Sequence record: PV037725.1
Direction: 5' to 3' (one strand)
DNA: 64,000 nucleotides
This document shows, one piece after another, positions 2,726 through 34,230 of this stretch (position 1 is the first letter of the stretch; each line of letters opens with the position of its first letter). Below the pieces are notes generated by a model that ran no database searches, had not been told where the DNA came from, and saw only the letters and a program-made list of their open reading frames with translations. The translations under genes and the position numbers were made by a program.

Positions 2726-4882
2726 TTAACGGAGCCATGCAGGCACCATTGGTTTAACGGGTTCTTGAACCACGAAGTTGTTAAAGTCGATTGGGATATC
2801 ATAAGCTTCGAACGCTCTGGTTAATGCACTATGCAAGATACGGTTCTCATCAAAGTATTCAACCTTAAAGTCTTCAGCTGCCACATTAGTGAAAACGTCA
2901 CCCTCGACAACCGGTGCAGTTACACCAGTAATCTCAGCAACCTGTTGGGTAGACCAGGCTAAGATGTCAGCACTACGGGTTGAGATATTTGGAATCTCGC
3001 CAGTATCAAGCGTACACTGATAGACATAGGTTTGTGAATCTTGACCCAGTCGATAGATACGTGAGATAGCCTGTTCCAGAATGTAAGCCCGGAATGGAGA
3101 GTTCAACAAGATCATGGTGTCAGCAATAGTTAACCGTACACCAGTCGACAGTGAGGCGTAAGTCGCAATCAAAGGGTTAAGTTGTTTGTCATTGTCGAAG
3201 CGCTTGACATGGTTAGCCAGGTCATTAGTGTTCTTACCGTAGACGACTAGGGGTTTCATACCCAACTTGATTACCTGAGCTTCAGCGGCATCGACGGCCT
3301 CAACGAAACTGGTAAACATGATTGTCTTCTTGAGCGTAGACTCAGTGATACCCACCCAGTCGATATATGGAATCATGGCCACGTGAGCCTCAATTCGCAT
3401 ACCGCCAACAATACGACCTAACGTTTCACCTTGGATCTTGAGGTTGACGTACTTAACAACTGACTTAACATCACGGAACTGCTTGATCATGGTCTGTGGC
3501 AATAGCTTCTCAAAGACATTCTTCTCGAAGGCGTTAGCTCGTTTCATTTCGTCACCTAAGTAACGAGGATCAGGGGTTCGTGAGATTAAATGTACGAGGT
3601 GCAAGTACTCATCGAATTCAATACGTGCCTGACGGTCCTTGAGGCCACTACGAGCGATCTTAATGCATTCCTCCCAGAACCGCATGTCTTGATCACGACG
3701 CTTCTGGTAATAGGCTGTACGCTCTTTAATGAAGGCTTCCATTACTTTACGAATAGCTGGAAGGGTGAAGCGTTCGCCATCTGGAATCTTGATTGGGTAA
3801 GGTCGCATGATTGGTGGCAGTAGTTCATCAGAGATCTCAGACTTCTCAATCTTGTAACTTACCAACCCCAAGCGGTGCCGAATAATGTCAAGACCCTTAG
3901 AGGCTTCTTTACCGTAGATCTTCTTAAAGATAGCTTCCACGTTCGGTGTGAACAATGGATCGACTACACGCAGTAGAGTAATGATCTCTGCGCCCAGTGC
4001 TTTGACGGGTGTACCGGAACCTTGAATGTTGTTTTCTGAACCAAGGAACTTCACCAGACTTTGATACAACATCGACCTCGCTGAGTTAGGGTCGTTCATG
4101 TTGTGGGATTCGTCAAGGATCGTAGTGACCTTCTTACCTTGATAGATAGTCGGATCTTCCAGTAGCTCCTGTAACTTGTTCATCGCGTCGTAGTGACAGA
4201 TAATCCAACGTTGCCCGGTATAGGCCATTGGTGATCCAGTGTGCCAGATCGATTGAGGGGTTTTGAACATCTCATTAACCGACTCGACCCAAACCGTTTC
4301 AAGTACCGACTTAGGACAGAATACAACAATGAGTTCAGAACCCAGCATCTCGGCAATAGCCGACATCATGTAAGTCTTACCAGAACCTGGGGCACCCGCG
4401 ATCAAGTCACCTTTTAGACCATACTGATCCAAGCGATAGCTATAGTTCTTGAAGTACTCCATCTGGTAAGGTTTAACAGTGAGGTTCATGTTAGACAGTT
4501 TACGGAAGTCCAATCGACCTACAACCGATGCGGTATCAGGTGGAATGGTATTCTTCAACCATGTCTTTTCCATCATCCCTTCAATGATGCCATTGATAGC
4601 ACGAATGCTCGTCCAACGGTGACGGTAGTTCTTGATGTTCTCAAGGATGTAAGTAATCTCAGGAGCAAAGAACTTATAGAAGCTAAATGACCCACCACTC
4701 ACGGTGTTGAAGATGTTCTGTGAGATCCGTGTAGTCTTCCAATACTTATCCATGTCTCGGACAATGTCTTTGGCTCGAATACCAGATACCACGATCTCAG
4801 TGCTAGTCTCCTTAATAGTGACTCCACCGAACAGTGTTCTGAATTGATCAATCATGTTGGTTGCTCTTGAGTTAATAATCAT
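2726..4882 (-). CDS. SF2 (SNF2/DEAD-like) helicase
   Basis: Walker A GAPGSGKT, Walker B LDESH, SGTP, motif V STGVRLT, motif VI QAISRIYRLGQ; start may be a few codons downstream. Confidence 0.9.
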   Translation of the reverse strand: MIINSRATNMIDQFRTLFGGVTIKETSTEIVVSGIRAKDIVRDMDKYWKTTRISQNIFNTVSGGSFSFYKFFAPEITYILENIKNYRHRWTSIRAINGIIEGMMEKTWLKNTIPPDTASVVGRLDFRKLSNMNLTVKPYQMEYFKNYSYRLDQYGLKGDLIAGAPGSGKTYMMSAIAEMLGSELIVVFCPKSVLETVWVESVNEMFKTPQSIWHTGSPMAYTGQRWIICHYDAMNKLQELLEDPTIYQGKKVTTILDESHNMNDPNSARSMLYQSLVKFLGSENNIQGSGTPVKALGAEIITLLRVVDPLFTPNVEAIFKKIYGKEASKGLDIIRHRLGLVSYKIEKSEISDELLPPIMRPYPIKIPDGERFTLPAIRKVMEAFIKERTAYYQKRRDQDMRFWEECIKIARSGLKDRQARIEFDEYLHLVHLISRTPDPRYLGDEMKRANAFEKNVFEKLLPQTMIKQFRDVKSVVKYVNLKIQGETLGRIVGGMRIEAHVAMIPYIDWVGITESTLKKTIMFTSFVEAVDAAEAQVIKLGMKPLVVYGKNTNDLANHVKRFDNDKQLNPLIATYASLSTGVRLTIADTMILLNSPFRAYILEQAISRIYRLGQDSQTYVYQCTLDTGEIPNISTRSADILAWSTQQVAEITGVTAPVVEGDVFTNVAAEDFKVEYFDENRILHSALTRAFEAYDIPIDFNNFVVQEPVKPMVPAWLR

Positions 4883-18478: not shown

Positions 18479-18942
18479 TCGAACATAAATTGCCAGAAGG
18501 CATGACTCTTCCTGAGTCTAAAGCTTGTATGACTGAACATAAGTTTCCTCTTCACATACCTGAGCATGACACACGTGTGAAGTTCATTGCACATGCCCTA
18601 AGTGACCCTAGATATAAAGGTATGTCTTCCGATGAGTTGGGCGCACTTCATGACATGCGTAGTCCATCTTTCGCACAGCGCTTGTTCGACATCCGAAACC
18701 AACATCTAAGTGAAGCCAAAGAGAGTTACACTTTTAGTGATGTTCAGAACATCACCGATAGTGTAATGACATCGGTTATTCAACTGGTAGGTCCGGGCGT
18801 AGAGCAGATTGACACAAAGTATCAACTGCATGATTACTATGCTGCCCCAACTGTGGATGGTGAAGGTAATACAGTGTATGATCATCGGTCAGCTGAAGCA
18901 GAAGTAAGTGTCCTGGACTACTGGGCATTGGTTAACGGATAA
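18475..18942 (+). CDS. hypothetical protein
   Basis: ATGA coupling. Confidence 0.7.
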   Translation: MIEHKLPEGMTLPESKACMTEHKFPLHIPEHDTRVKFIAHALSDPRYKGMSSDELGALHDMRSPSFAQRLFDIRNQHLSEAKESYTFSDVQNITDSVMTSVIQLVGPGVEQIDTKYQLHDYYAAPTVDGEGNTVYDHRSAEAEVSVLDYWALVNG

Positions 18943-18990: not shown

Positions 18991-19602
18991 ATGACTATCC
19001 TAGCTGACTGGCAGATCAGAGATCTGTGCACCGGTGAAACACCAATGATTCACCCGTTCTACCCAAACAAAATGCGTTACCTTGCACAAGACGCTAACGA
19101 TGACCTGGCACCATTCATTCGTGTACCATCGTTTGGTCTGTCGAGTTACGGTTACGACATCGGGTTGTCGGATGTAGGTCTGAAGTTGTTCACTGACGTA
19201 AACTGTGGTGAAGTAGATCCACGCAATATTGATCCGGGTATCTACATTGAACCTAAGATCAAGTTTGCCGACGATGGTGCGCCATACGTACACCTACCAC
19301 CGAATGGCTTCCTTCTGGGCCACACCCCTGAATGGTTCGATATGCCTAACAACGTGTTGGGTAACTGCCTAGGTAAGTCTACCTACGCTCGTGGTGCTGT
19401 ATCCGTAATTGTTACACCGTTGGAGCCGGGTTGGAAAGGTAATCTGGTTGTTGAAGTAGTAAACAACTGTAACCTCCCAGTACGGATCTATCTGAACTGC
19501 GGTATTGCTCAAGTACTGTTCCTTCAAGGGGAACCGTGCGAGTCACCTTACGGTGATGGGAAGTACCAGGGACAACGTGGTACGCAAGACGCTTTGGCAT
19601 AA
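18991..19602 (+). CDS. dcd: dCTP deaminase
   Basis: SSYGYDI, GKSTYARG, TPLEPGW.G.LVVE, IAQVLF, KYQGQ. Confidence 0.93.
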   Translation: MTILADWQIRDLCTGETPMIHPFYPNKMRYLAQDANDDLAPFIRVPSFGLSSYGYDIGLSDVGLKLFTDVNCGEVDPRNIDPGIYIEPKIKFADDGAPYVHLPPNGFLLGHTPEWFDMPNNVLGNCLGKSTYARGAVSVIVTPLEPGWKGNLVVEVVNNCNLPVRIYLNCGIAQVLFLQGEPCESPYGDGKYQGQRGTQDALA

Positions 19603-19608
19603 CCGATT

Positions 19609-19635
19609 GGAGGTTCTTCGGAGCCTCCCTTTATT
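19609..19635 (+). terminator. intrinsic terminator
   Basis: GGAGGTTC-TTCG-GAGCCTCC-CTTTATT. Confidence 0.8.
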
Positions 19636-19658
19636 CCGTATTTTATTTGGAGTTACTT

Positions 19659-20216
19659 ATGGACTTTTTCGTTACCGATCCTAAAGGTGTTTACATTCTC
19701 AACCACGATGGCCCAATTCGAGTTGATCATCATGAAAATAGTTTGTACATACTAAACAACTACCACAAATCTGAGTACACTCAAAGCCTGATTGATATCA
19801 CTTTGGTAAGTAGTGGAAACGAAAGTGAAGTTGAGCACCGCCTGGAAGAGCTAACTAAGTTAAAACGTTTTGACTTTTTACTAGTTAAGAATTACCCAGA
19901 GACCAGTCGTATAAACTCAATGGGTTCGTTGGGGTCTCAGGATCACTATACACGGGCATCTAGAATCGCCCTGGCCTATGTGAAAGACGCTAAGGTCGAT
20001 CACCCGGATACCTTTAGATCGTTCACCATCGCTGACGATGATACACGTAAAGTATTGGCTCGCTTACCAAAGATTACCCCAGAAGTAATGGATGCATTGG
20101 TAACAGCCGGCGTTATACGTAGTTGGGAATACTACGAATATCCATGGGTGAATAACTTTACATTCACACAACCCAAAGGTAGTCCTGCGCCTGCGGACTT
20201 GAGGACTTACGCATAA
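19659..20216 (+). CDS. hypothetical protein
   Basis: GGAG RBS; coupled to ligase paralog. Confidence 0.75.
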   Translation: MDFFVTDPKGVYILNHDGPIRVDHHENSLYILNNYHKSEYTQSLIDITLVSSGNESEVEHRLEELTKLKRFDFLLVKNYPETSRINSMGSLGSQDHYTRASRIALAYVKDAKVDHPDTFRSFTIADDDTRKVLARLPKITPEVMDALVTAGVIRSWEYYEYPWVNNFTFTQPKGSPAPADLRTYA

Positions 20217-21160
20217 TGAACGATCACGAGGCTAGACACTGTGTCAGTATCCGAGCTGTAAAGGAAATCCAAAAGCTTCGTGATGAGATTCATTTTCATG
20301 AGCTAGCTCGAGATATCTTTAAGAGTGGTGAGTTTGACGAAGTAGCTTATCAAGAAGCACAAGCAGCTTTGTATCGGTTGTCAGAACGCTTTGGTCGTGA
20401 GGCATTGATCACCACTAAGGCTAGGCCCATCGCTGAACAGATAAAATCGTTTGGCGCTGTGGCTAAACATGACTTCCCGGTGCTAGATTACAAACCTGCA
20501 CGCACATTGATGCATATCCGTAATTGGTTAGGTATGGTTGATAGTGACTATACCGACAGCATTGATATTGTCATGACACCTTACTTTAATGGGTGCCGTG
20601 TCGAACTAGTGTATCAGGGTGGATCACTTCATAAAGCCATCACTAAGGGTGGTGGTTTGACTGGTACTGACTTCACCATGAACGCCTACCTGATCGAGGG
20701 TATTCCACAGCAGATCAATGAAACTGAACGTGTAAGTATTCGTGGAGTTATTACCTCTACACTTAAAAACACTAAGGGTGTGGATGAGAAGAGATTCATC
20801 GCTGCAAATCTGATCTCAAATGAACCCACTAACATTTATTTGAATCATCTCGTATTCGTGCCAGATGACTGGCATATTCCTGGTACAACATTCAACTCAA
20901 CAGATCTCAGATCTATATCACTAGCTTGGAATATCGAACCGGGGTACGCAATGACTTTCCCCGGTCAGTATAAAGAGCTTGGGTATCTTGAAGAGAAGAT
21001 TGCTGAATTCAGACATGCCGCTAAATGTAAGATTCCCTTCACGGGGATTTTGTTTACAGTTAACACTCTCGCTAGGAAGATGGAGCTTGGCTATACGTCA
21101 GTTCATCCCGAGTGGGCAATTTTGTTAGAAGAGGAACAATCCAATGGCGTCAGCACTTGA
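20216..21160 (+). CDS. LigA adenylation-domain paralog, catalytically degenerate
   Basis: collinear with LigA N-terminal half; KxDG replaced by YFNG, TRGDG by TKGGG, RGE by RGV, DGIV.K by TGILFT; ends before the OB fold. Confidence 0.8.
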   Translation: MNDHEARHCVSIRAVKEIQKLRDEIHFHELARDIFKSGEFDEVAYQEAQAALYRLSERFGREALITTKARPIAEQIKSFGAVAKHDFPVLDYKPARTLMHIRNWLGMVDSDYTDSIDIVMTPYFNGCRVELVYQGGSLHKAITKGGGLTGTDFTMNAYLIEGIPQQINETERVSIRGVITSTLKNTKGVDEKRFIAANLISNEPTNIYLNHLVFVPDDWHIPGTTFNSTDLRSISLAWNIEPGYAMTFPGQYKELGYLEEKIAEFRHAAKCKIPFTGILFTVNTLARKMELGYTSVHPEWAILLEEEQSNGVST

Positions 21161-23231
21161 ATACGCTGAATTAGTAAAACGGATTCGACACTACAACTAC
21201 TTCTATTACGTGTTGGACATCACACTGGTACCGGACTCTGTCTATGATCAGTTGTTCAAGGCGTTGAAGTTAATGGAGGAAATAAACCCGGAGTGGGTAT
21301 CCAAGAACTCTCCAACTCAAACAGTCGGTCATCTTGCGTATGAGTCGCACTTTGAGTTGGTGAAGCGTGCCATACCAATGCTCAGCCTAGACAACGTGTT
21401 TACTCCAGATGAAGCGGTTGATTGGGGCACCGATGTTCATGGTGACATCCTCGACTCCAAGACCGATGAATCCGCTGAGATCGTAACTGAGTGGAAGATG
21501 GACGGCCTCAGTCTGGACGTAGATTACACGTACGACACGATGAATATTGCTACAACACGGGGCGATGGCACTACCGGTGAGAACGTTACGCCTAATGCCA
21601 TGATGGTTGAAGGTATCCCACGTGTACTGAAAACACCACGTCATGGCGGGGTGTCCATTCGGGGTGAAGTCGTTGTACGGTTGGCCGACTACAACCAAAT
21701 AAATGCAGAGCTGGAAGCAGCTGGTAAGAAAACCTTCGCCAACCCACGTAACTATGCTGCGGGCAGTTTGCGGCAAAAAGACCCACGTATTACACGTGAG
21801 CGCAAGTTGGTGTTTGTAGCCTACAGCATCGAACGTGCTTTTGGTGATCCTGAAGCTGATTGGTATAAAGACCAAGAGTGGTTGAAAGAGAATGGCTTCT
21901 TTACGGCGGATACTGGTAAACGTCTGAATCACTCCAGACCGGGCATGACTACAGGCGTACCTAAATTACTTGAAGAATGCCAGGCTGAGCGACCTAACTA
22001 TCCATTCGAAGTGGATGGTATTGTGTTCAAGGTCGTAAAGCATGCGCACCGTGAGAAGCTGGGGTTCACTAGCCGATTCCCAAGATGGGCTCGGGCTTAT
22101 AAGTTCCCTGCCTCTAAAGGTGAGACTCGTTTACTAAGTGTTGACCGTCAAGTAGGTCGGACAGGTAAGCTGACTCCGATGGCGCGTATTGAGCCAGTAC
22201 ATGTTCACGGTACCACTATCTCTAACGTGACTATCCATAACCTGAAGGAACTGGATCAACACCAGTTGTTTGAAGGTTGCTATGTGGAGATCTCTCGTGC
22301 GGGTGACGTAATCCCTTATCTGGAACGACGTATTACGGACAACCCAGGCTTGCCTGTTTATGGTGAGGTCGAATGCTGCCCTACCTGTAATACAAAAGTA
22401 GTGGTGATAGTCGGTAAGAAAACCAAAGACAATCCTGAAGGGTCACGTACTGAGTACTGTCCTAACTCGAAATGTCCTGGTCGTCAGATTGCCCACCTTA
22501 AGTATTGCACTCACCGCGATGTGTTGAACATTAAGGGTCTGGGTGATGAAACCGTAGTTAAGCTGCATGAACAGGGCGTGGTGGACGTAACTCGACCATT
22601 GAGTTTACTGCTACTCAAGCCAGAAGACTTCCTGAAGATTGGTGAGTCTGATCGAATGGCAGAGAAGCTGGGAACCGCTGTAACGATTGCTAAGCTTACT
22701 TTGGACTTACCTCGAGTCGTTACAGCCTTGGGTATTTCTGGCGCGGCAGATGGTACAGCAGAGCGCTTGTCGCGGGTCATCAGATCACTCGAAGAGATCT
22801 CTAAAGCCAGTATCGATCAGATGCGTGCAATCCCTGATATCGGTCCAGTTACTGCGGAAAGTATCTTCGAGTTCTTTGATGAAGATAACCGTAAGCCTGA
22901 TGCTGAGTCTGCATGGAAACCTTTTGTGGGTGAACAACACCTTAAGGCTCCTGAGCCATTGAGTGGGTTATTCCAACACGGCACTACTTTTGTCGTCACC
23001 GGTAGTAAGTTCGGTGGTAAGGCCCGTAAGGACTTGGAGAAATGGTTTAAGCAAAATGGTGCAACCGTATCGAGTACCGTAACTAAATCGACCACCACGT
23101 TGTACTGCGGTACCAAATACACTGCACACAAACTTGAGACGGCTAAGCAACTGGGTATCCCCTACGTCATCTATAACGAAGACGGAATTGCTGAAACCAA
23201 TATCGAAAATTCAATTGACTTAAATTTCTGA
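21144..23231 (+). CDS. ligA: NAD-dependent DNA ligase
   Basis: KMDG, TRGDG, RGE, NPRNYAAGSLRQ, DGIVFK, RWARAYKF, OB fold, C4 zinc finger, HhH, BRCT. Confidence 0.97.
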   Translation: MASALEYAELVKRIRHYNYFYYVLDITLVPDSVYDQLFKALKLMEEINPEWVSKNSPTQTVGHLAYESHFELVKRAIPMLSLDNVFTPDEAVDWGTDVHGDILDSKTDESAEIVTEWKMDGLSLDVDYTYDTMNIATTRGDGTTGENVTPNAMMVEGIPRVLKTPRHGGVSIRGEVVVRLADYNQINAELEAAGKKTFANPRNYAAGSLRQKDPRITRERKLVFVAYSIERAFGDPEADWYKDQEWLKENGFFTADTGKRLNHSRPGMTTGVPKLLEECQAERPNYPFEVDGIVFKVVKHAHREKLGFTSRFPRWARAYKFPASKGETRLLSVDRQVGRTGKLTPMARIEPVHVHGTTISNVTIHNLKELDQHQLFEGCYVEISRAGDVIPYLERRITDNPGLPVYGEVECCPTCNTKVVVIVGKKTKDNPEGSRTEYCPNSKCPGRQIAHLKYCTHRDVLNIKGLGDETVVKLHEQGVVDVTRPLSLLLLKPEDFLKIGESDRMAEKLGTAVTIAKLTLDLPRVVTALGISGAADGTAERLSRVIRSLEEISKASIDQMRAIPDIGPVTAESIFEFFDEDNRKPDAESAWKPFVGEQHLKAPEPLSGLFQHGTTFVVTGSKFGGKARKDLEKWFKQNGATVSSTVTKSTTTLYCGTKYTAHKLETAKQLGIPYVIYNEDGIAETNIENSIDLNF

Positions 23232-23239
23232 GGTGCGCT

Positions 23240-24406
23240 ATGGGTTGGTTTAAAGATCTTTTCTTTGGTAAACCGCAAAATGGTATTGGCGGCGATGAAC
23301 CAAAAGTGAAAAATAAGGTGTCTACGACCGATGAACTTTACGAACACCTGATCCGGGATTTCAAGGAGTACCCTAGTCTAATCGCAGATCTTGAGGTAGA
23401 CCACCATTGCCCTGATACTGGGCGTTTAATATCGAAGAAACTTTACCTTAAGTTAGTAGATGGTGTGATATGTCCATTTACCATAGATCTAAATTACACT
23501 ACCTTTTGGAACCATAGGTCATTTTCTCGGGAGAACATGTTAACGCTCATTGCTGACGATTATAGTAATTATCATCGCACTGTGACCCTTAATCTCGATT
23601 TCCGAATCAAGTGGATCACACCAAGTTCAATCACTAGGGTAACTGAAGCCTTAACCACTAACGCGATCGCCAGTGCGGTACCGTACACAGCACGCCAGGT
23701 TTTTGACGGTTTCTACGCTAGCGAGAAGTGGGGTAATGATAGTGTTCGGTATTATGTTAAAAATATGGAGGGTGGCAATAACGATTACGTTACCCGTGAC
23801 TTACCATATTGGTTTACCGATCTGGCGTTGAGTCTAGGAACCATTAAACTGGCTGAAGACCCTAATAAATACGTCGTCACTGATCCACTTCAGGTTGATC
23901 GCAAGCTCCTTCCTAATACGTATTGGCGGCGCTGGGTAAATGTGACCAAGGCAGTGAATAATTCCAAGGCTGCGGTTAAATATGTCCCACGTGACTCAGG
24001 TCGTGGTTACGTTCAGTACTTCGATGTAGCCTTTATATTCGATGATCCTGAAACGGCAGGTATGGCCTTCGATGCAGGTGAGTTACTCGGTTATGCAATC
24101 ACACAGTTGAAAAAGCAGCTCGACGTAACGATCCCAGATAAGCCTACGCATTACCACGAAGGTACTGCTATTTCGTACGGTAATATCAAGTCGAATATCT
24201 ACATCAACCCAGACCACATCAAAGTTAGCTGGCAAGATAAAGAGGTCTCATTGCAAGATTGGCTTGACCTACAACGTGAATCAGAGACAAATTTGGAGAG
24301 ACCTTATTTCTCACCCAATCTACCGGTAACAAGCATCCACGGGAATAAATTCTCGATCGATGCGGACTATTACATCAACCATACCCCATGGACACCACCG
24401 AAATGA
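23240..24406 (+). CDS. hypothetical protein, paralog of 24403-25428
   Basis: shared C-terminal domain PNT..RW...T..V.N. Confidence 0.8.
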   Translation: MGWFKDLFFGKPQNGIGGDEPKVKNKVSTTDELYEHLIRDFKEYPSLIADLEVDHHCPDTGRLISKKLYLKLVDGVICPFTIDLNYTTFWNHRSFSRENMLTLIADDYSNYHRTVTLNLDFRIKWITPSSITRVTEALTTNAIASAVPYTARQVFDGFYASEKWGNDSVRYYVKNMEGGNNDYVTRDLPYWFTDLALSLGTIKLAEDPNKYVVTDPLQVDRKLLPNTYWRRWVNVTKAVNNSKAAVKYVPRDSGRGYVQYFDVAFIFDDPETAGMAFDAGELLGYAITQLKKQLDVTIPDKPTHYHEGTAISYGNIKSNIYINPDHIKVSWQDKEVSLQDWLDLQRESETNLERPYFSPNLPVTSIHGNKFSIDADYYINHTPWTPPK

Positions 24407-25428
24407 CTATCCGTAATTACCTGAAACAAAAGTGGCAAGAAAGCTTTGTTGAACCCGCTGTTTTCGCAGCTGTTGCAAAGATGTTGCGCGATGGAATCCC
24501 AATCGTAAAGGTTCGCTACCGTAGTCATCCAGAACCACGTTACTATACAGGTACTGGTCTACCTTACGGTAACGGTAGTGGGAAACGCGCACGCTGGATG
24601 ATGGAAGTAACCCACTTTGAAGAGCTTCATGATGGTATCAGCGAACTTGCACCTAAGATCCTACCGTGGATGGATGCTACGGAATTGGATCTTCTAGTCA
24701 AGTGGGATAACAGTCACGTCTACATGATCGAGGCAGTTTTCGTTTCAGCTGTAACCCATGACGATCAACTGGATATCATCAAAGATATCGTTCGTCGATT
24801 GAAGCCAGGACAGGGCTACAACTACAGTGGCTCTGAGATCAAACAGGACTTCATTCAACCAGATGGCTACCTCGTACACACCGGTAACACTAAACGCTTA
24901 GTATCTGAAGAATATCTCAATACTGGCGTAGTTTTCCCACGTGATGCCTTCGGTAGTGACTTCAAGGTTAAGAACCTATTCATCGCGGATGAGAAGAAAA
25001 TCAAACGTCAGCATCGACCTAACACTGATCTTAAGCGTTGGACTGTGTTGACACATCTCGTTAGTAATGAAGATCCATGGGTTATCAAGTATACTCATGA
25101 TAACACCGCTGGTGCACCCGTGCATTACTACGGTTTGGCAATTGATATCGACTCTAAGTTGATGAAAGGCCATCCGTTCTATATCACTGAGTTAGTCGAA
25201 AGTGCTGCAAATGAAGTGTTTGCCAAACACGGTGCCGGTAACTACACCCTGAATACAGATCGCATCTTTATTCAGTGGGAAGGTCACAGTGACCGTCTTC
25301 CTAATTGGTTGGAACACGCTAAAAAGTTTGAGGGTTTTGTAGATACCGCCCCGGTGATCGTCTATAAGAAACTTGAATCACGTATTGCTCGGCGATACAA
25401 CGGTAAACTCGAAGTAACGGAGGCTTAA
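24403..25428 (+). CDS. hypothetical protein, paralog of 23240-24406
   Basis: ATGA coupling; shared C-terminal domain. Confidence 0.8.
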   Translation: MTIRNYLKQKWQESFVEPAVFAAVAKMLRDGIPIVKVRYRSHPEPRYYTGTGLPYGNGSGKRARWMMEVTHFEELHDGISELAPKILPWMDATELDLLVKWDNSHVYMIEAVFVSAVTHDDQLDIIKDIVRRLKPGQGYNYSGSEIKQDFIQPDGYLVHTGNTKRLVSEEYLNTGVVFPRDAFGSDFKVKNLFIADEKKIKRQHRPNTDLKRWTVLTHLVSNEDPWVIKYTHDNTAGAPVHYYGLAIDIDSKLMKGHPFYITELVESAANEVFAKHGAGNYTLNTDRIFIQWEGHSDRLPNWLEHAKKFEGFVDTAPVIVYKKLESRIARRYNGKLEVTEA

Positions 25429-31618: not shown

Positions 31619-32476
31619 ATGATCGAGTTTAGTACGTACAAAGGTTGGTCACTTGTAGAGGGTACCGTCTTTAAAGATGGTTGCCCCAATCCACGCTTGA
31701 CTAAATACCAAATCTGTCAAGTAGAAGAACAAGTCACCGTTACATTGAAGGCACACATCCCAGACATGACTGAGATGTTTAGTCTGATCCTTACCGTTGA
31801 TGCTGTTCGACGTATTCGACCAGATGCCAAGATTAAGCTGATCCTTCCATATCTACCATACGCTCGACAAGACCGTGTGTGTAATCGTGGTGAGGCAAAC
31901 GGTATAGCCGCCTTTGCGCGAGTATTGAATAGCTTAGATTTCGCCAGTGTCGAACTACTGGACCCGCACAGTGATGTTGCCGTTGGTGTCATTGATCGTA
32001 GCATTACTACCAATATGGCTGAGTTCATGAACCGCCAGACCAGAATGGGTTGGATGGACTTCGGCAATACTTGGCTGGTGGCACCTGATGCTGGTGCAGT
32101 AAAACGTGTAAAGGAACTCGTTAAAGAACTTGGTGCGGCGGGTATGATTACCGCGACTAAGGAACGGGATACGGAAACTCGTGAACTCACTAAGACCAAA
32201 CTGGACGAAGACACCACCGGACGTAATATTCTGGTTGTGGACGATCTGTGTGATGGAGGTCGTACGTTCATCGCCTTGGCTAAAGCAATCCGTGAACATG
32301 GTGAACCCGAAACACTTCGATTGTGGGTAACTCACGGTATCTTCAGTTATGGTACTGAGGTGGTGACTGAACACTTTGATGGCGTTTACACCACTAACAG
32401 CTTCCAACATGAAGCGATCGGGCATACCGATGGTCAGGGCAACCACGATCAGAAGATGCACTGGTTCCAAGTTTAA
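31619..32476 (+). CDS. prs: ribose-phosphate pyrophosphokinase-like enzyme (NARP1 Adps candidate)
   Basis: PYLPYARQDR, DPHS, APDAGA, KERD, VVDDLCDGGRTF, THGIFS. Confidence 0.9.
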   Translation: MIEFSTYKGWSLVEGTVFKDGCPNPRLTKYQICQVEEQVTVTLKAHIPDMTEMFSLILTVDAVRRIRPDAKIKLILPYLPYARQDRVCNRGEANGIAAFARVLNSLDFASVELLDPHSDVAVGVIDRSITTNMAEFMNRQTRMGWMDFGNTWLVAPDAGAVKRVKELVKELGAAGMITATKERDTETRELTKTKLDEDTTGRNILVVDDLCDGGRTFIALAKAIREHGEPETLRLWVTHGIFSYGTEVVTEHFDGVYTTNSFQHEAIGHTDGQGNHDQKMHWFQV

Positions 32477-32505: not shown

Positions 32506-34230
32506 ATGTCGACTAATTTCCAACTGTTTGGCCCTACCACTGCTGATGTCTACAAAATGGGTCACGGCCCACTGTATCCACGTGGTACTAACTTCGCTTA
32601 CGGTAACGGTACCCCACGTGCTGATCGTTTGTTTATCGGTTCGAAATCCCAATCGCAGTTCTGGGATCACAAAGTAGTTTGGTTTGGTATCCAAGCAGTA
32701 ATGCGTGAAGTTGCTGGTATCTGGGATACTAGCTTCTTTAAGCGTGACAAGGCTACTGTGATCCGTCGTTACAAACGCCGCATGGACACCTGCATTGGTC
32801 CAGGCATGGTTGACATCGATGCCATGGCTGCACTGCACGATCTGGGTTACCTGCCAGTGACAGTACTGAGCATTCCAGAAGGTGCTCGCCTGAACATGAA
32901 CGTTCCGGGTTATGTTATCTACAACACCAAGCCCGAGTTCTACTGGGTTGTCAACTACCTCGAAACCATCATGTCTTCGTTGATCTGGGCCATGATCACC
33001 AACACTACGATTGCTTATGAGTATCGTCGTGTGTTGGAACACTTCGCACATCTGACTGGTTCGCCAATTGAAGGTGTTGACTTCCAAGGTCACGACTTTG
33101 CACTGCGTGGGATCAACAACCCAACGGCTGCCGCATTCTCGAACTCTGGTCACTTGGTATTCTTCAAAGGTACTGACACTCTGCCAGCGATTGACTTCGT
33201 TGAAGACATGTACTTTGCTGATGCTGAGAAAGAGTTCCTTGCAGCTTCCGTAGTTGCAACTGAACACGCCGTAGCTACCTCCAACATTCTGTATCGTCTG
33301 GCTCTGAAGATCAAAGCTCTGGGTAAAACCGAAGCTGAGATTCCTAAGGAAGAACTCGATGCACTGAAGCTGGAAGCAGAACGTGAGTTCATTATTGAAG
33401 CCATTACTGAGAAAGTACCAACCGGTATCATCTCTCTGGTTTCCGATAGCTTTGACTTCTGGGGTGTGTTGACCCGTGTGTTCCCTTCTATTAAGGAAGA
33501 GATCCTGAGTCGTAAGCCTGATGCTAACGGTTTGGCTAAAGTCGTAGTTCGTCCAGACTCGGGTGATCCGGTTGAAGTGATCTGTGGTCGTGAAATCCTC
33601 ACCTACAAAGAATGGCAGACTGGTTCCAAAGTAAATGGTCAACTGGTTTACCATTATGACCAAGTTTGTAAAGTGACCCTAGAACGAGAAGGTTATGACT
33701 TCACCCCGTATGTACTTAGTGCCGAAGAGAAGGGTGCTGTTGAAGTACTGTGGGAAACCTTCGGTGGTACTGTGAACGAGAAGGGCTTCAAAGTCCTGCA
33801 CGAACGTATTGGCCTGATCTATGGTGACTCCATCACCGTAGCCCGTACCGAAGAGATCATGCGCCGCCTGATGAAGAAAGGTTTCGCATCCTCTAACTGG
33901 GTACTGGGTATCGGTTCTTACACCTATCAGCACAACACTCGTGATACCTTTGGCTTTGCGGTTAAAGCAACCGCCATTCAGGTAGACGATCTGTTTGTTG
34001 AACTGTTTAAGGCACCGAAGACTGAAGGTGAAACCAACAAGAAATCTGCTAAGGGTTTCCTGAAGGTGGTTCGTGATGAGGCTGGTAACTACGTCCTCGA
34101 GCAAAACCAAACGTTCGGTATTGATGAGATTGATACTTCGTCGGGTGAACTGAAAGTCGTCTTCAAAGACGGTAAGTTCCCTAACCCAGTGACTTTCTCT
34201 GAAGTCCGCGCACGCGCCGCATTGGCATAA
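32506..34230 (+). CDS. nadV: nicotinamide phosphoribosyltransferase-like enzyme (NARP1 Namat candidate)
   Basis: D.YK.GH, HDFALRG, ATEHAV, SLVSDSFD, VVRPDSGDP, LIYGDSIT, GIGSYTYQ, KKSAKG. Confidence 0.93.
   Translation: MSTNFQLFGPTTADVYKMGHGPLYPRGTNFAYGNGTPRADRLFIGSKSQSQFWDHKVVWFGIQAVMREVAGIWDTSFFKRDKATVIRRYKRRMDTCIGPGMVDIDAMAALHDLGYLPVTVLSIPEGARLNMNVPGYVIYNTKPEFYWVVNYLETIMSSLIWAMITNTTIAYEYRRVLEHFAHLTGSPIEGVDFQGHDFALRGINNPTAAAFSNSGHLVFFKGTDTLPAIDFVEDMYFADAEKEFLAASVVATEHAVATSNILYRLALKIKALGKTEAEIPKEELDALKLEAEREFIIEAITEKVPTGIISLVSDSFDFWGVLTRVFPSIKEEILSRKPDANGLAKVVVRPDSGDPVEVICGREILTYKEWQTGSKVNGQLVYHYDQVCKVTLEREGYDFTPYVLSAEEKGAVEVLWETFGGTVNEKGFKVLHERIGLIYGDSITVARTEEIMRRLMKKGFASSNWVLGIGSYTYQHNTRDTFGFAVKATAIQVDDLFVELFKAPKTEGETNKKSAKGFLKVVRDEAGNYVLEQNQTFGIDEIDTSSGELKVVFKDGKFPNPVTFSEVRARAALA

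Follow-up and report, generated by a model that had tools for sequence, protein, structure and literature searches.

DNA ligases are textbook single-chain enzymes. Dead duplicated domains which are under purifying selection and co-expressed with an active paralogue are known as prozymes, for example those of the trypanosomatid enzymes AdoMetDC and DHS. In the ligases of the T5 type, which depend on nicotinamide adenine dinucleotide (NAD) and are split into two subunits, subunit A is catalytically active. In the structures of the heterodimeric NAD-dependent ligase of PR1 (T5-like; PDB 9hu3 and 9i5i) a stand-alone nucleotidyltransferase (NTase) subunit assembles in trans with an OB/HhH subunit. 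Here we analysed a window of 64,000 nucleotides from the sequence record PV037725.1, the genome of Pseudomonas phage Viktualia, a 322.7-kb phage of P. syringae; positions 19600-23300 are 100% identical to this genome, and the window coordinates are those of the record. In this window the gene for a complete NAD-dependent DNA ligase (LigA) is preceded by an open reading frame (ORF) of 314 aa (20216-21160, plus strand) which corresponds to the N-terminal LigA module only, is annotated as CDS0038 'NAD-dependent DNA ligase' and is referred to below as psi-LigA (pseudo-LigA). It is almost certain that psi-LigA is a catalytically dead pseudo-enzyme from an ancient partial duplication of ligA, which is maintained by selection and coupled to ligA. 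A role as a putative non-catalytic partner of LigA is proposed tentatively.

A stand-alone adenylation module

The only Pfam match of psi-LigA is the LigA adenylation domain PF01653 (E 1.2e-18; 68 bits, with the cut-off at 27). PHROG 3359, 'NAD-dependent DNA ligase', matches with an E-value of 3.5e-44, and an alignment with the LigA encoded downstream shows 26% identity to its N-terminal half over 224 columns (E 5e-13). Solved LigA adenylation domains are matched by positions 12-306 of a psi-LigA family profile (E 3e-43), in which one row was a true LigA. Psi-LigA terminates a few residues past the position of motif V, which is the boundary between the NTase and OB domains, and is devoid of OB, zinc finger, HhH and BRCT domains. 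It had originally been predicted from the sequence that the ORF is collinear with the LigA domains Ia and NTase, stops at the domain boundary, is uninterrupted and overlaps the start of ligA. All of this is borne out by the Pfam match, the alignment and an overlap of 17 nt.

The structure prediction that had been suggested as a check gave a confident AlphaFold2 model (pLDDT 86.6, pTM 0.84, built on 17 sequences), in which a helical domain Ia is followed by a mixed alpha/beta NTase domain. The top Foldseek matches of this model are exclusively LigA adenylation domains (E 7.6e-22, TM 0.69-0.70); weaker matches include the split PR1 (T5-like) ligase and ATP-dependent ligases. With a net charge of about -6.5 and an isoelectric point (pI) of 5.9 the Viktualia protein is acidic, similar to the N-terminal half of LigA. 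The pI values of the psi-LigAs (5.0-6.7) are close to those of LigA N-terminal halves, and neither charge nor pI points to a protein that mimics or binds DNA.

Replacement of catalytic and pocket residues

The residues of psi-LigA were compared by alignment with E. coli LigA (MG1655 record), and all statements on the pocket are based on this alignment. Every motif change that had been listed in the original prediction was verified: KMDG is replaced by YFNG, TRGDG by TKGGG, RGE by RGV, DGIVFK by TGILFT and RWARAYKF by EWAILLEE. In E. coli numbering the replacements in Viktualia are K115Y, D117N, R136K, D138G, E173V, Y225D, D285T, K290T, R308E and K314E, which presumably affect residues that mutational studies of the E. 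coli enzyme have identified as essential. D117, E173 and K314 are missing in every member of the psi-LigA family, and R308 is a glutamate in all of them. The motif I lysine K115 is likewise missing; the only exceptions are two Phabio-like sequences, from which D117 and the remaining catalytic residues are absent. A protein of this kind would be unable to adenylate itself or to seal nicks by the ligase mechanism. The downstream LigA of Viktualia retains every catalytic residue examined together with the OB, HhH and BRCT domains, and all catalytic residues are kept in every co-resident LigA that was aligned (nine, plus two more).

The changes are not confined to the catalytic motifs. Among the positions with at least 90% conservation in a set of 54 LigAs, 43 are changed in the majority of the psi-LigAs. 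At 21 alignment positions the same residue is conserved in both groups; most of them are occupied by glycines, prolines and core hydrophobic residues, and the block LG[FY]TS..P.W is included. Another 23 positions are conserved in psi-LigA only, among them R70, Q75, D86, H139, Y158, R172, P222, E260 and E299. The invariant E299 sits where LigA has R308, which amounts to a charge reversal. Altogether 27 residues are invariant in 21 psi-LigA sequences, including H85, D86, H139, D152, R172 and E299.

Ligase activity through an alternative lysine, which had been named in advance as a finding that would speak against a dead enzyme, was considered and rejected, because none of the lysines reaches 90% conservation among the 21 sequences. 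The invariant residues, and here especially the histidines H85 and H139, could instead belong to an enzyme with new chemistry that uses another nucleophile or substrate. We consider this highly improbable: none of the residues with which the nucleotidyltransferase superfamily binds metal and phosphate is left, H139 should, judged by the strand register, lie far from the old pocket, and we know of no precedent.

The pentad Y22/H23/D32/Y35/D36 of E. coli LigA, which we take from the literature to bind nicotinamide mononucleotide (NMN), reads R/D/E/Y/Q in Viktualia and R-D-E/x-Y/x-Q/x in Viktualia together with the nine closest clusters. The contacts to adenine and ribose have changed in Viktualia as well (E113 to T, Y225 to D, K290 to T, E173 to V and D285 to T). 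The basal psi-LigAs (Phabio gp331, L015, L016, L019 and P0014) retain the full pentad Y-H-D-Y-D, and some basal members retain E113, R136, D138, D285 or K290, while the clade of Viktualia and 201phi2-1 has lost nearly all of these. As far as can be judged from the alignment, the active site of the family is lost stepwise.

Binding of NAD, NMN or adenosine monophosphate (AMP) was among the roles that had been proposed for psi-LigA. For the Viktualia protein canonical binding of these ligands is unlikely in view of its altered pentad and contacts; this part of the proposal is disfavoured, and it holds as a possibility for the basal relatives with the pentad. A broader version of the idea is that psi-LigA, independently of LigA, binds NAD+, NMN, AMP or a defence signal derived from ADP-ribose via the former nucleotide pocket or via the NMN site in domain Ia, and acts as sensor, buffer or sponge. 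It would be in line with the entire Ia and NTase fold that is retained in the model, with the residues kept in the basal lineages, and with the conservation of the pocket-lining substitutions themselves within the Viktualia clade. Moreover, the phage invests in NAD+: about 10 kb downstream a PRPP-synthetase-like gene (31619-32476, PF00156/PF13793) adjoins a gene of the NAPRTase/NAMPT family (32506-34230, PF04095, E 4e-28), and from their domain assignments the two fit an NAD+ reconstitution pair. This pair is relevant here because the phage ligase needs NAD+, and NAD+ supply clearly matters to Viktualia. We nevertheless regard a ligand-binding role of this kind as unlikely, since selection is still strong in Viktualia and its nine closest clusters after the canonical binding residues have gone, and a sponge needs no linkage to ligA in every genome. 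The loss of the pocket residues in the Viktualia clade under undiminished constraint points to a selected property that would be independent of the old pocket.

The arginines R200, R208, R277 and R308, which are conserved in all LigAs examined and which we assume to face the DNA, are replaced in psi-LigA. Together with the absence of an OB/HhH module this makes a LigA-like binding of nicks by psi-LigA unlikely. A non-catalytic binder of DNA ends or nicks, or a scaffold acting on DNA in the replication and repair machinery of the phage nucleus, is therefore very unlikely, the more so as R308 is always a glutamate, the zinc module is missing as well and the protein is acidic. What this explanation has in its favour are the block LGYTS..P.W and the T154 region of the NTase core, which are the best-conserved segments, and the localisation of the LigA of PhiPA3 (gp257) within the phage nucleus (PMC10643120). 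DNA ligase is also listed in a review among the proteins enclosed by the shell of 201phi2-1 (PMC12908238).

Distribution among jumbo phages

The closest named relative of Viktualia is the nucleus-forming jumbo phage 201phi2-1, and Viktualia can be described as 201phi2-1-like. A word-based protein search revealed 15 relatives of psi-LigA with 281-330 aa and 92% to 33% identity. Two more psi-LigA-bearing phage contigs of 320 kb came from IMG/VR, and two further psi-LigAs which were missed by the word search were found upstream of more distant phage LigAs. Altogether the orthologues number at least 24, with identities that go down to 26%, and all of them have open frames. Frequent disruption in relatives would have been expected of a decaying gene according to the original prediction; no disrupted copy was seen among these orthologues.

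A profile search against 1.84 billion cluster representatives indicates how sharply the family is delimited. It recovered six clusters at 50% identity (300-339 aa, E 2e-88 or better), all of which are catalytically dead. The next match is a full-length PhiPA3-like phage LigA (E 6e-48), followed by ordinary LigAs. Other short LigA-like matches (333-415 aa) are fragments or split subunits in which no catalytic residue has been lost. Within the curated collection of phages two LigA-like places are restricted to Viktualia, 201phi2-1 (gp332, 72% identity) and Phabio (gp331, 28%), and in the latter two the orthologue is likewise located upstream of ligA; a single such place is present in each of PhiPA3, PS119XW, BRkr and other jumbo phages of the collection.

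Three of the called proteins, P0010, P0011 and P0014, are only 281-291 aa long. The tblastn similarity to psi-LigA extends upstream of the called starts (L010 3953-4000, L011 626-682), and the three seem to be N-terminal truncations caused by gene calling.

In GenBank the psi-LigA genes are named 'NAD-dependent DNA ligase' or 'putative DNA ligase', and the former label wrongly implies two active ligases. The 2008 annotation of 201phi2-1 describes gp332 only as 'member of COG0272'. Among the papers that could be searched, none was found that mentions gp332 of 201phi2-1, discusses psi-LigA orthologues or deals with a DNA ligase pseudo-enzyme of jumbo phages.

Selective constraint

The ratio of nonsynonymous to synonymous substitution rates (dN/dS, omega) of psi-LigA is based on a single pair, Viktualia and its metagenomic relative L005 (90% identical, full-length alignment), as synonymous sites are saturated or nearly so in all remaining pairs. 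For this pair dN is 0.071 and dS is 0.92, which gives an omega of 0.078 (bootstrap 0.045-0.124). The LigAs of the same two phages have an omega of 0.069 overall and of 0.087 for the NTase part. By this comparison the purifying selection on psi-LigA equals that on ligA in strength. In the saturated pairs the dN of psi-LigA is about 1.05-2.2 times (mostly 1.3-2 times) that of LigA.

The core of the original prediction was that psi-LigA is a pseudo-enzyme kept by selection rather than a decaying duplicate, and dN/dS had been named as the check. The omega value, which is not near 1, the open frames in at least 24 orthologues and their constant position support this claim. A non-functional remnant of the duplication which has yet to decay could account for the loss of catalytic residues, and for nothing else. 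Its probability is negligible given the omega, the intact frames in at least 24 lineages down to 26% identity, the 27 invariant residues and a long stem in the tree (about 2.3 substitutions per site) that is followed by conservation. The remnant is refuted by these selection and conservation data, and it is the only one of the competing explanations that we exclude.

The rates also bear on a decoy, likewise among the roles originally proposed, or an inhibitor, which would mimic the ligase NTase and thereby absorb a host or defence protein that recognises or attacks the phage LigA, or sequester a partner of the host LigA. A dead, structurally faithful mimic of the N-terminal half of LigA which evolves faster than LigA at the protein level and is confined to one phage subclade would suit such a task. 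However, an omega of 0.078 gives no sign of positive selection, and with 21 shared conserved positions and a pairwise identity of about 22% the mimic would be a poor one. No known defence that targets LigA was found, no dedicated search for one having been made. We regard the decoy as distinctly unlikely.

The synonymous divergence between Viktualia and L005 is uneven. From 20420 to 22120, over the NTase part of psi-LigA and the NTase domain of LigA, dS is about 1.2; it is 0.36 in domain Ia of psi-LigA and 0.63 in the C-terminal half of LigA. This suggests a recombination tract that may have carried both NTase domains together. Three patches (18574-18931, 19732-20126 and 23327-24322) have only 36-69% nucleotide identity to L005 amid 80-90%, which indicates probable gene replacement or fast evolution of small hypothetical genes, of the 189-aa gene upstream and of the 388-aa gene downstream.

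Phylogenetic origin

In a maximum-likelihood tree (LG+C20) of 71 N-terminal modules of LigA and psi-LigA the psi-LigAs are monophyletic (100/100) and sit on the long stem already mentioned. They join the phage LigA lineages beside the LigAs of Phabio and BRkr, outside the bacterial LigA clade, which is itself supported with 100/100. The exact attachment node was flagged as a long-branch join and may be an artefact. Within psi-LigA the lineages branch in roughly the same order as the co-resident LigAs.

Most simply, a phage ligA underwent one partial tandem duplication before the split of the Phabio and 201phi2-1 lineages, and both genes were then inherited together; the lineage of PhiPA3 and BRkr either lost psi-LigA or diverged earlier. 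This single duplication would have copied domain Ia and the NTase domain and ended at the OB boundary. The copy would then have lost the adenylatable lysine and the remaining catalytic residues, and would have been held by purifying selection from then on.

Overlap with the ligA gene

In all 14 distinct loci that could be read psi-LigA is located directly upstream of the LigA gene and overlaps it by 14-53 nt (in L009 LigA ends with the contig). A Shine-Dalgarno motif GAGGA or AAGGA and AATCCAATG at the ligA start recur in members which are only about 35% identical. The overlap and this junction fit a translational coupling of psi-LigA and LigA. With stop and start overlapping in every relative, a single message would serve for both proteins, and their translation is probably coupled.

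A fusion of psi-LigA and LigA by frameshifting was considered as well. It was rejected because LigA has its own Shine-Dalgarno motif, its own ATG and always a complete N-terminal module, because the length of the overlap varies, and because the two genes are in another frame relation in the L010 lineage.

Possible function

We tentatively favour the explanation that psi-LigA is a putative non-catalytic partner which works with LigA, either as an accessory or regulatory subunit or as an adaptor to another component of the phage nucleus. This role fits because the coupling of psi-LigA to ligA is invariant. Psi-LigA could bind LigA, for example its OB/HhH half, in the manner of the trans NTase module of the split T5-like ligases, or it could bind a partner of LigA within the phage nucleus. 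In either case it would tune the activity, targeting or stability of the ligase. For the explanation as a whole, that is the pseudo-enzyme together with its partnership with LigA, our confidence is slightly less than even. More specifically, psi-LigA may be an obligate putative non-catalytic subunit (a 'prozyme') of the chimallivirus DNA ligase, which alters its activity, its responsiveness to NAD+ and NMN or its recruitment to the nucleus; this narrower version is doubtful.

Several points weigh against a partnership. A tandem duplicate would also be adjacent and coupled simply through its descent. As a rule LigA functions as a self-sufficient monomer, and the PhiPA3- and BRkr-like relatives have a single LigA and no psi-LigA. 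The NMN pentad and the NAD contacts of the basal members give hints of an ancestral ligand-binding role that may have been untied to LigA. Finally, no expression or localisation data were found in the literature for gp332 or its orthologues.

The psi-LigA family occurs in nucleus-forming jumbo phages (201phi2-1, Phabio and Viktualia) which are leading models of phage cell biology, and direct experiments are feasible. If psi-LigA partners LigA, DNA joining would be subject to a new level of control within a compartment from which host enzymes are excluded. If the basal psi-LigAs bind NAD-related ligands, they would be linked to the contest for NAD+ between phages and bacterial defences.

Genomic surroundings

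The features of the locus are listed in Table 1. All genes are encoded on the plus strand, in the order dCTP deaminase, 189-aa hypothetical protein, psi-LigA, LigA and two hypothetical proteins of 388 and 346 aa. The first base of the psi-LigA ATG is the final base of the TAA stop codon of the upstream gene. The hairpin behind the dCTP deaminase gene may mark the start of a transcription unit that carries psi-LigA and ligA.

Table 1. Features of the psi-LigA/ligA locus of phage Viktualia (PV037725.1).
Feature	Position	Strand	Remarks
Terminator-like hairpin 3' of the dCTP deaminase gene	19609..19628	+	Pattern match only
Upstream hypothetical gene	19647..20216	+	189 aa from TTG (185 aa annotated, from 19659)
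psi-LigA start	20201..20218	+	GAGGA Shine-Dalgarno-like site 20201-20205, ATG 20216-20218
psi-LigA (pseudo-LigA) CDS, 314 aa	20216..21160	+	Catalytically dead homologue of LigA domain Ia and NTase module
psi-LigA domain Ia-like helical region, residues ~12-65	20249..20410	+	Model helices 12-35, 42-58, 60-65
psi-LigA NTase-like domain, residues ~69-308	20420..21139	+	Structural glycines and LGYTS..PEW block kept; catalytic residues of motifs I, Ia, III, IV and V replaced
psi-LigA/ligA junction	21131..21160	+	GAGGA 21131-21135, ligA ATG 21144, psi-LigA TGA 21158-21160; 17-nt overlap
LigA, complete NAD-dependent DNA ligase, 695 aa	21144..23231	+	Ia, NTase, OB, Cys cluster, HhH, BRCT; catalytic residues all intact
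Two paralogous hypothetical genes	23240..25428	+	388 aa (23240-24406) and 346 aa (24388-25428)

Outside Viktualia the 189-aa gene is confined to L005-L007, the closest relatives, with an identity of 47-64%, and it has no family matches. In 201phi2-1 it is missing and the dCTP deaminase gene is directly followed by gp332; the gene is therefore not an obligate part of the psi-LigA/ligA unit. In L007 an HNH endonuclease gene (2792-3388, weak match to PF13392), probably coding for a homing endonuclease, is located between the dCTP deaminase gene and a 186-aa gene upstream of psi-LigA.

The Pfam LigA zinc finger PF03119 is not reported for the LigA of Viktualia and related phage LigAs, while it is reported for bacterial ones. 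In the Viktualia protein the cysteines are present at about residues 405-445, on both sides of an insertion of about 20 residues.

In all psi-LigA-positive loci for which sequence downstream of ligA was available, ligA is followed by a member of the 388/346-aa family, in most cases directly, and the family is absent from the psi-LigA-negative locus of BRkr. The 346-aa protein gave a confident AlphaFold model (pLDDT 90.7); no match to Pfam, PHROG or a solved structure was found (Foldseek E >0.1). Its best VIA match (Z 3.5, residues 17-118) is weakly WYL/Sm-like.

Relation to described systems

Over its full length psi-LigA shares the fold and the domain order with the adenylation module of LigA (EC 6.5.1.2, PF22745/PF01653), and its identity to the co-resident LigA is 22-26%. 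The structural glycines G118, G137, G139 and G286 and the block LG[FY]TS..P.W are common to both. In contrast to LigA, psi-LigA lacks the catalytic residues and the OB, zinc, HhH and BRCT parts, and differs at the 43 changed LigA-conserved and 23 family-specific positions.

The split T5-like NAD+ ligase, with NTase subunit A and OB/HhH subunit B, is similar in so far as a stand-alone N-terminal half of about 320 aa is encoded beside the gene of the remaining ligase part, and 'subunit A' annotations appear among the database relatives of psi-LigA. However, the partner of the T5-like subunit A has no NTase, whereas the neighbour of psi-LigA is a complete LigA of 695 aa with its own domain Ia and NTase. 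Subunit A is the only NTase of that system, while psi-LigA stands alone as well but has lost its catalytic residues.

The prozymes resemble psi-LigA in the loss of catalysis, in purifying selection and in the presence of an active paralogue; for psi-LigA this likeness is known from the genes alone. DNA ligases are not known to us to use subunits of the prozyme type. If that reading of psi-LigA is true, it would be the first known case of an NAD-dependent ligase that operates as a heteromer of enzyme and pseudo-enzyme. We also know of no described dead LigA paralogue that is kept by selection, so that psi-LigA, a pseudo-enzyme from a known enzyme family, is to our knowledge the first selectively maintained one.

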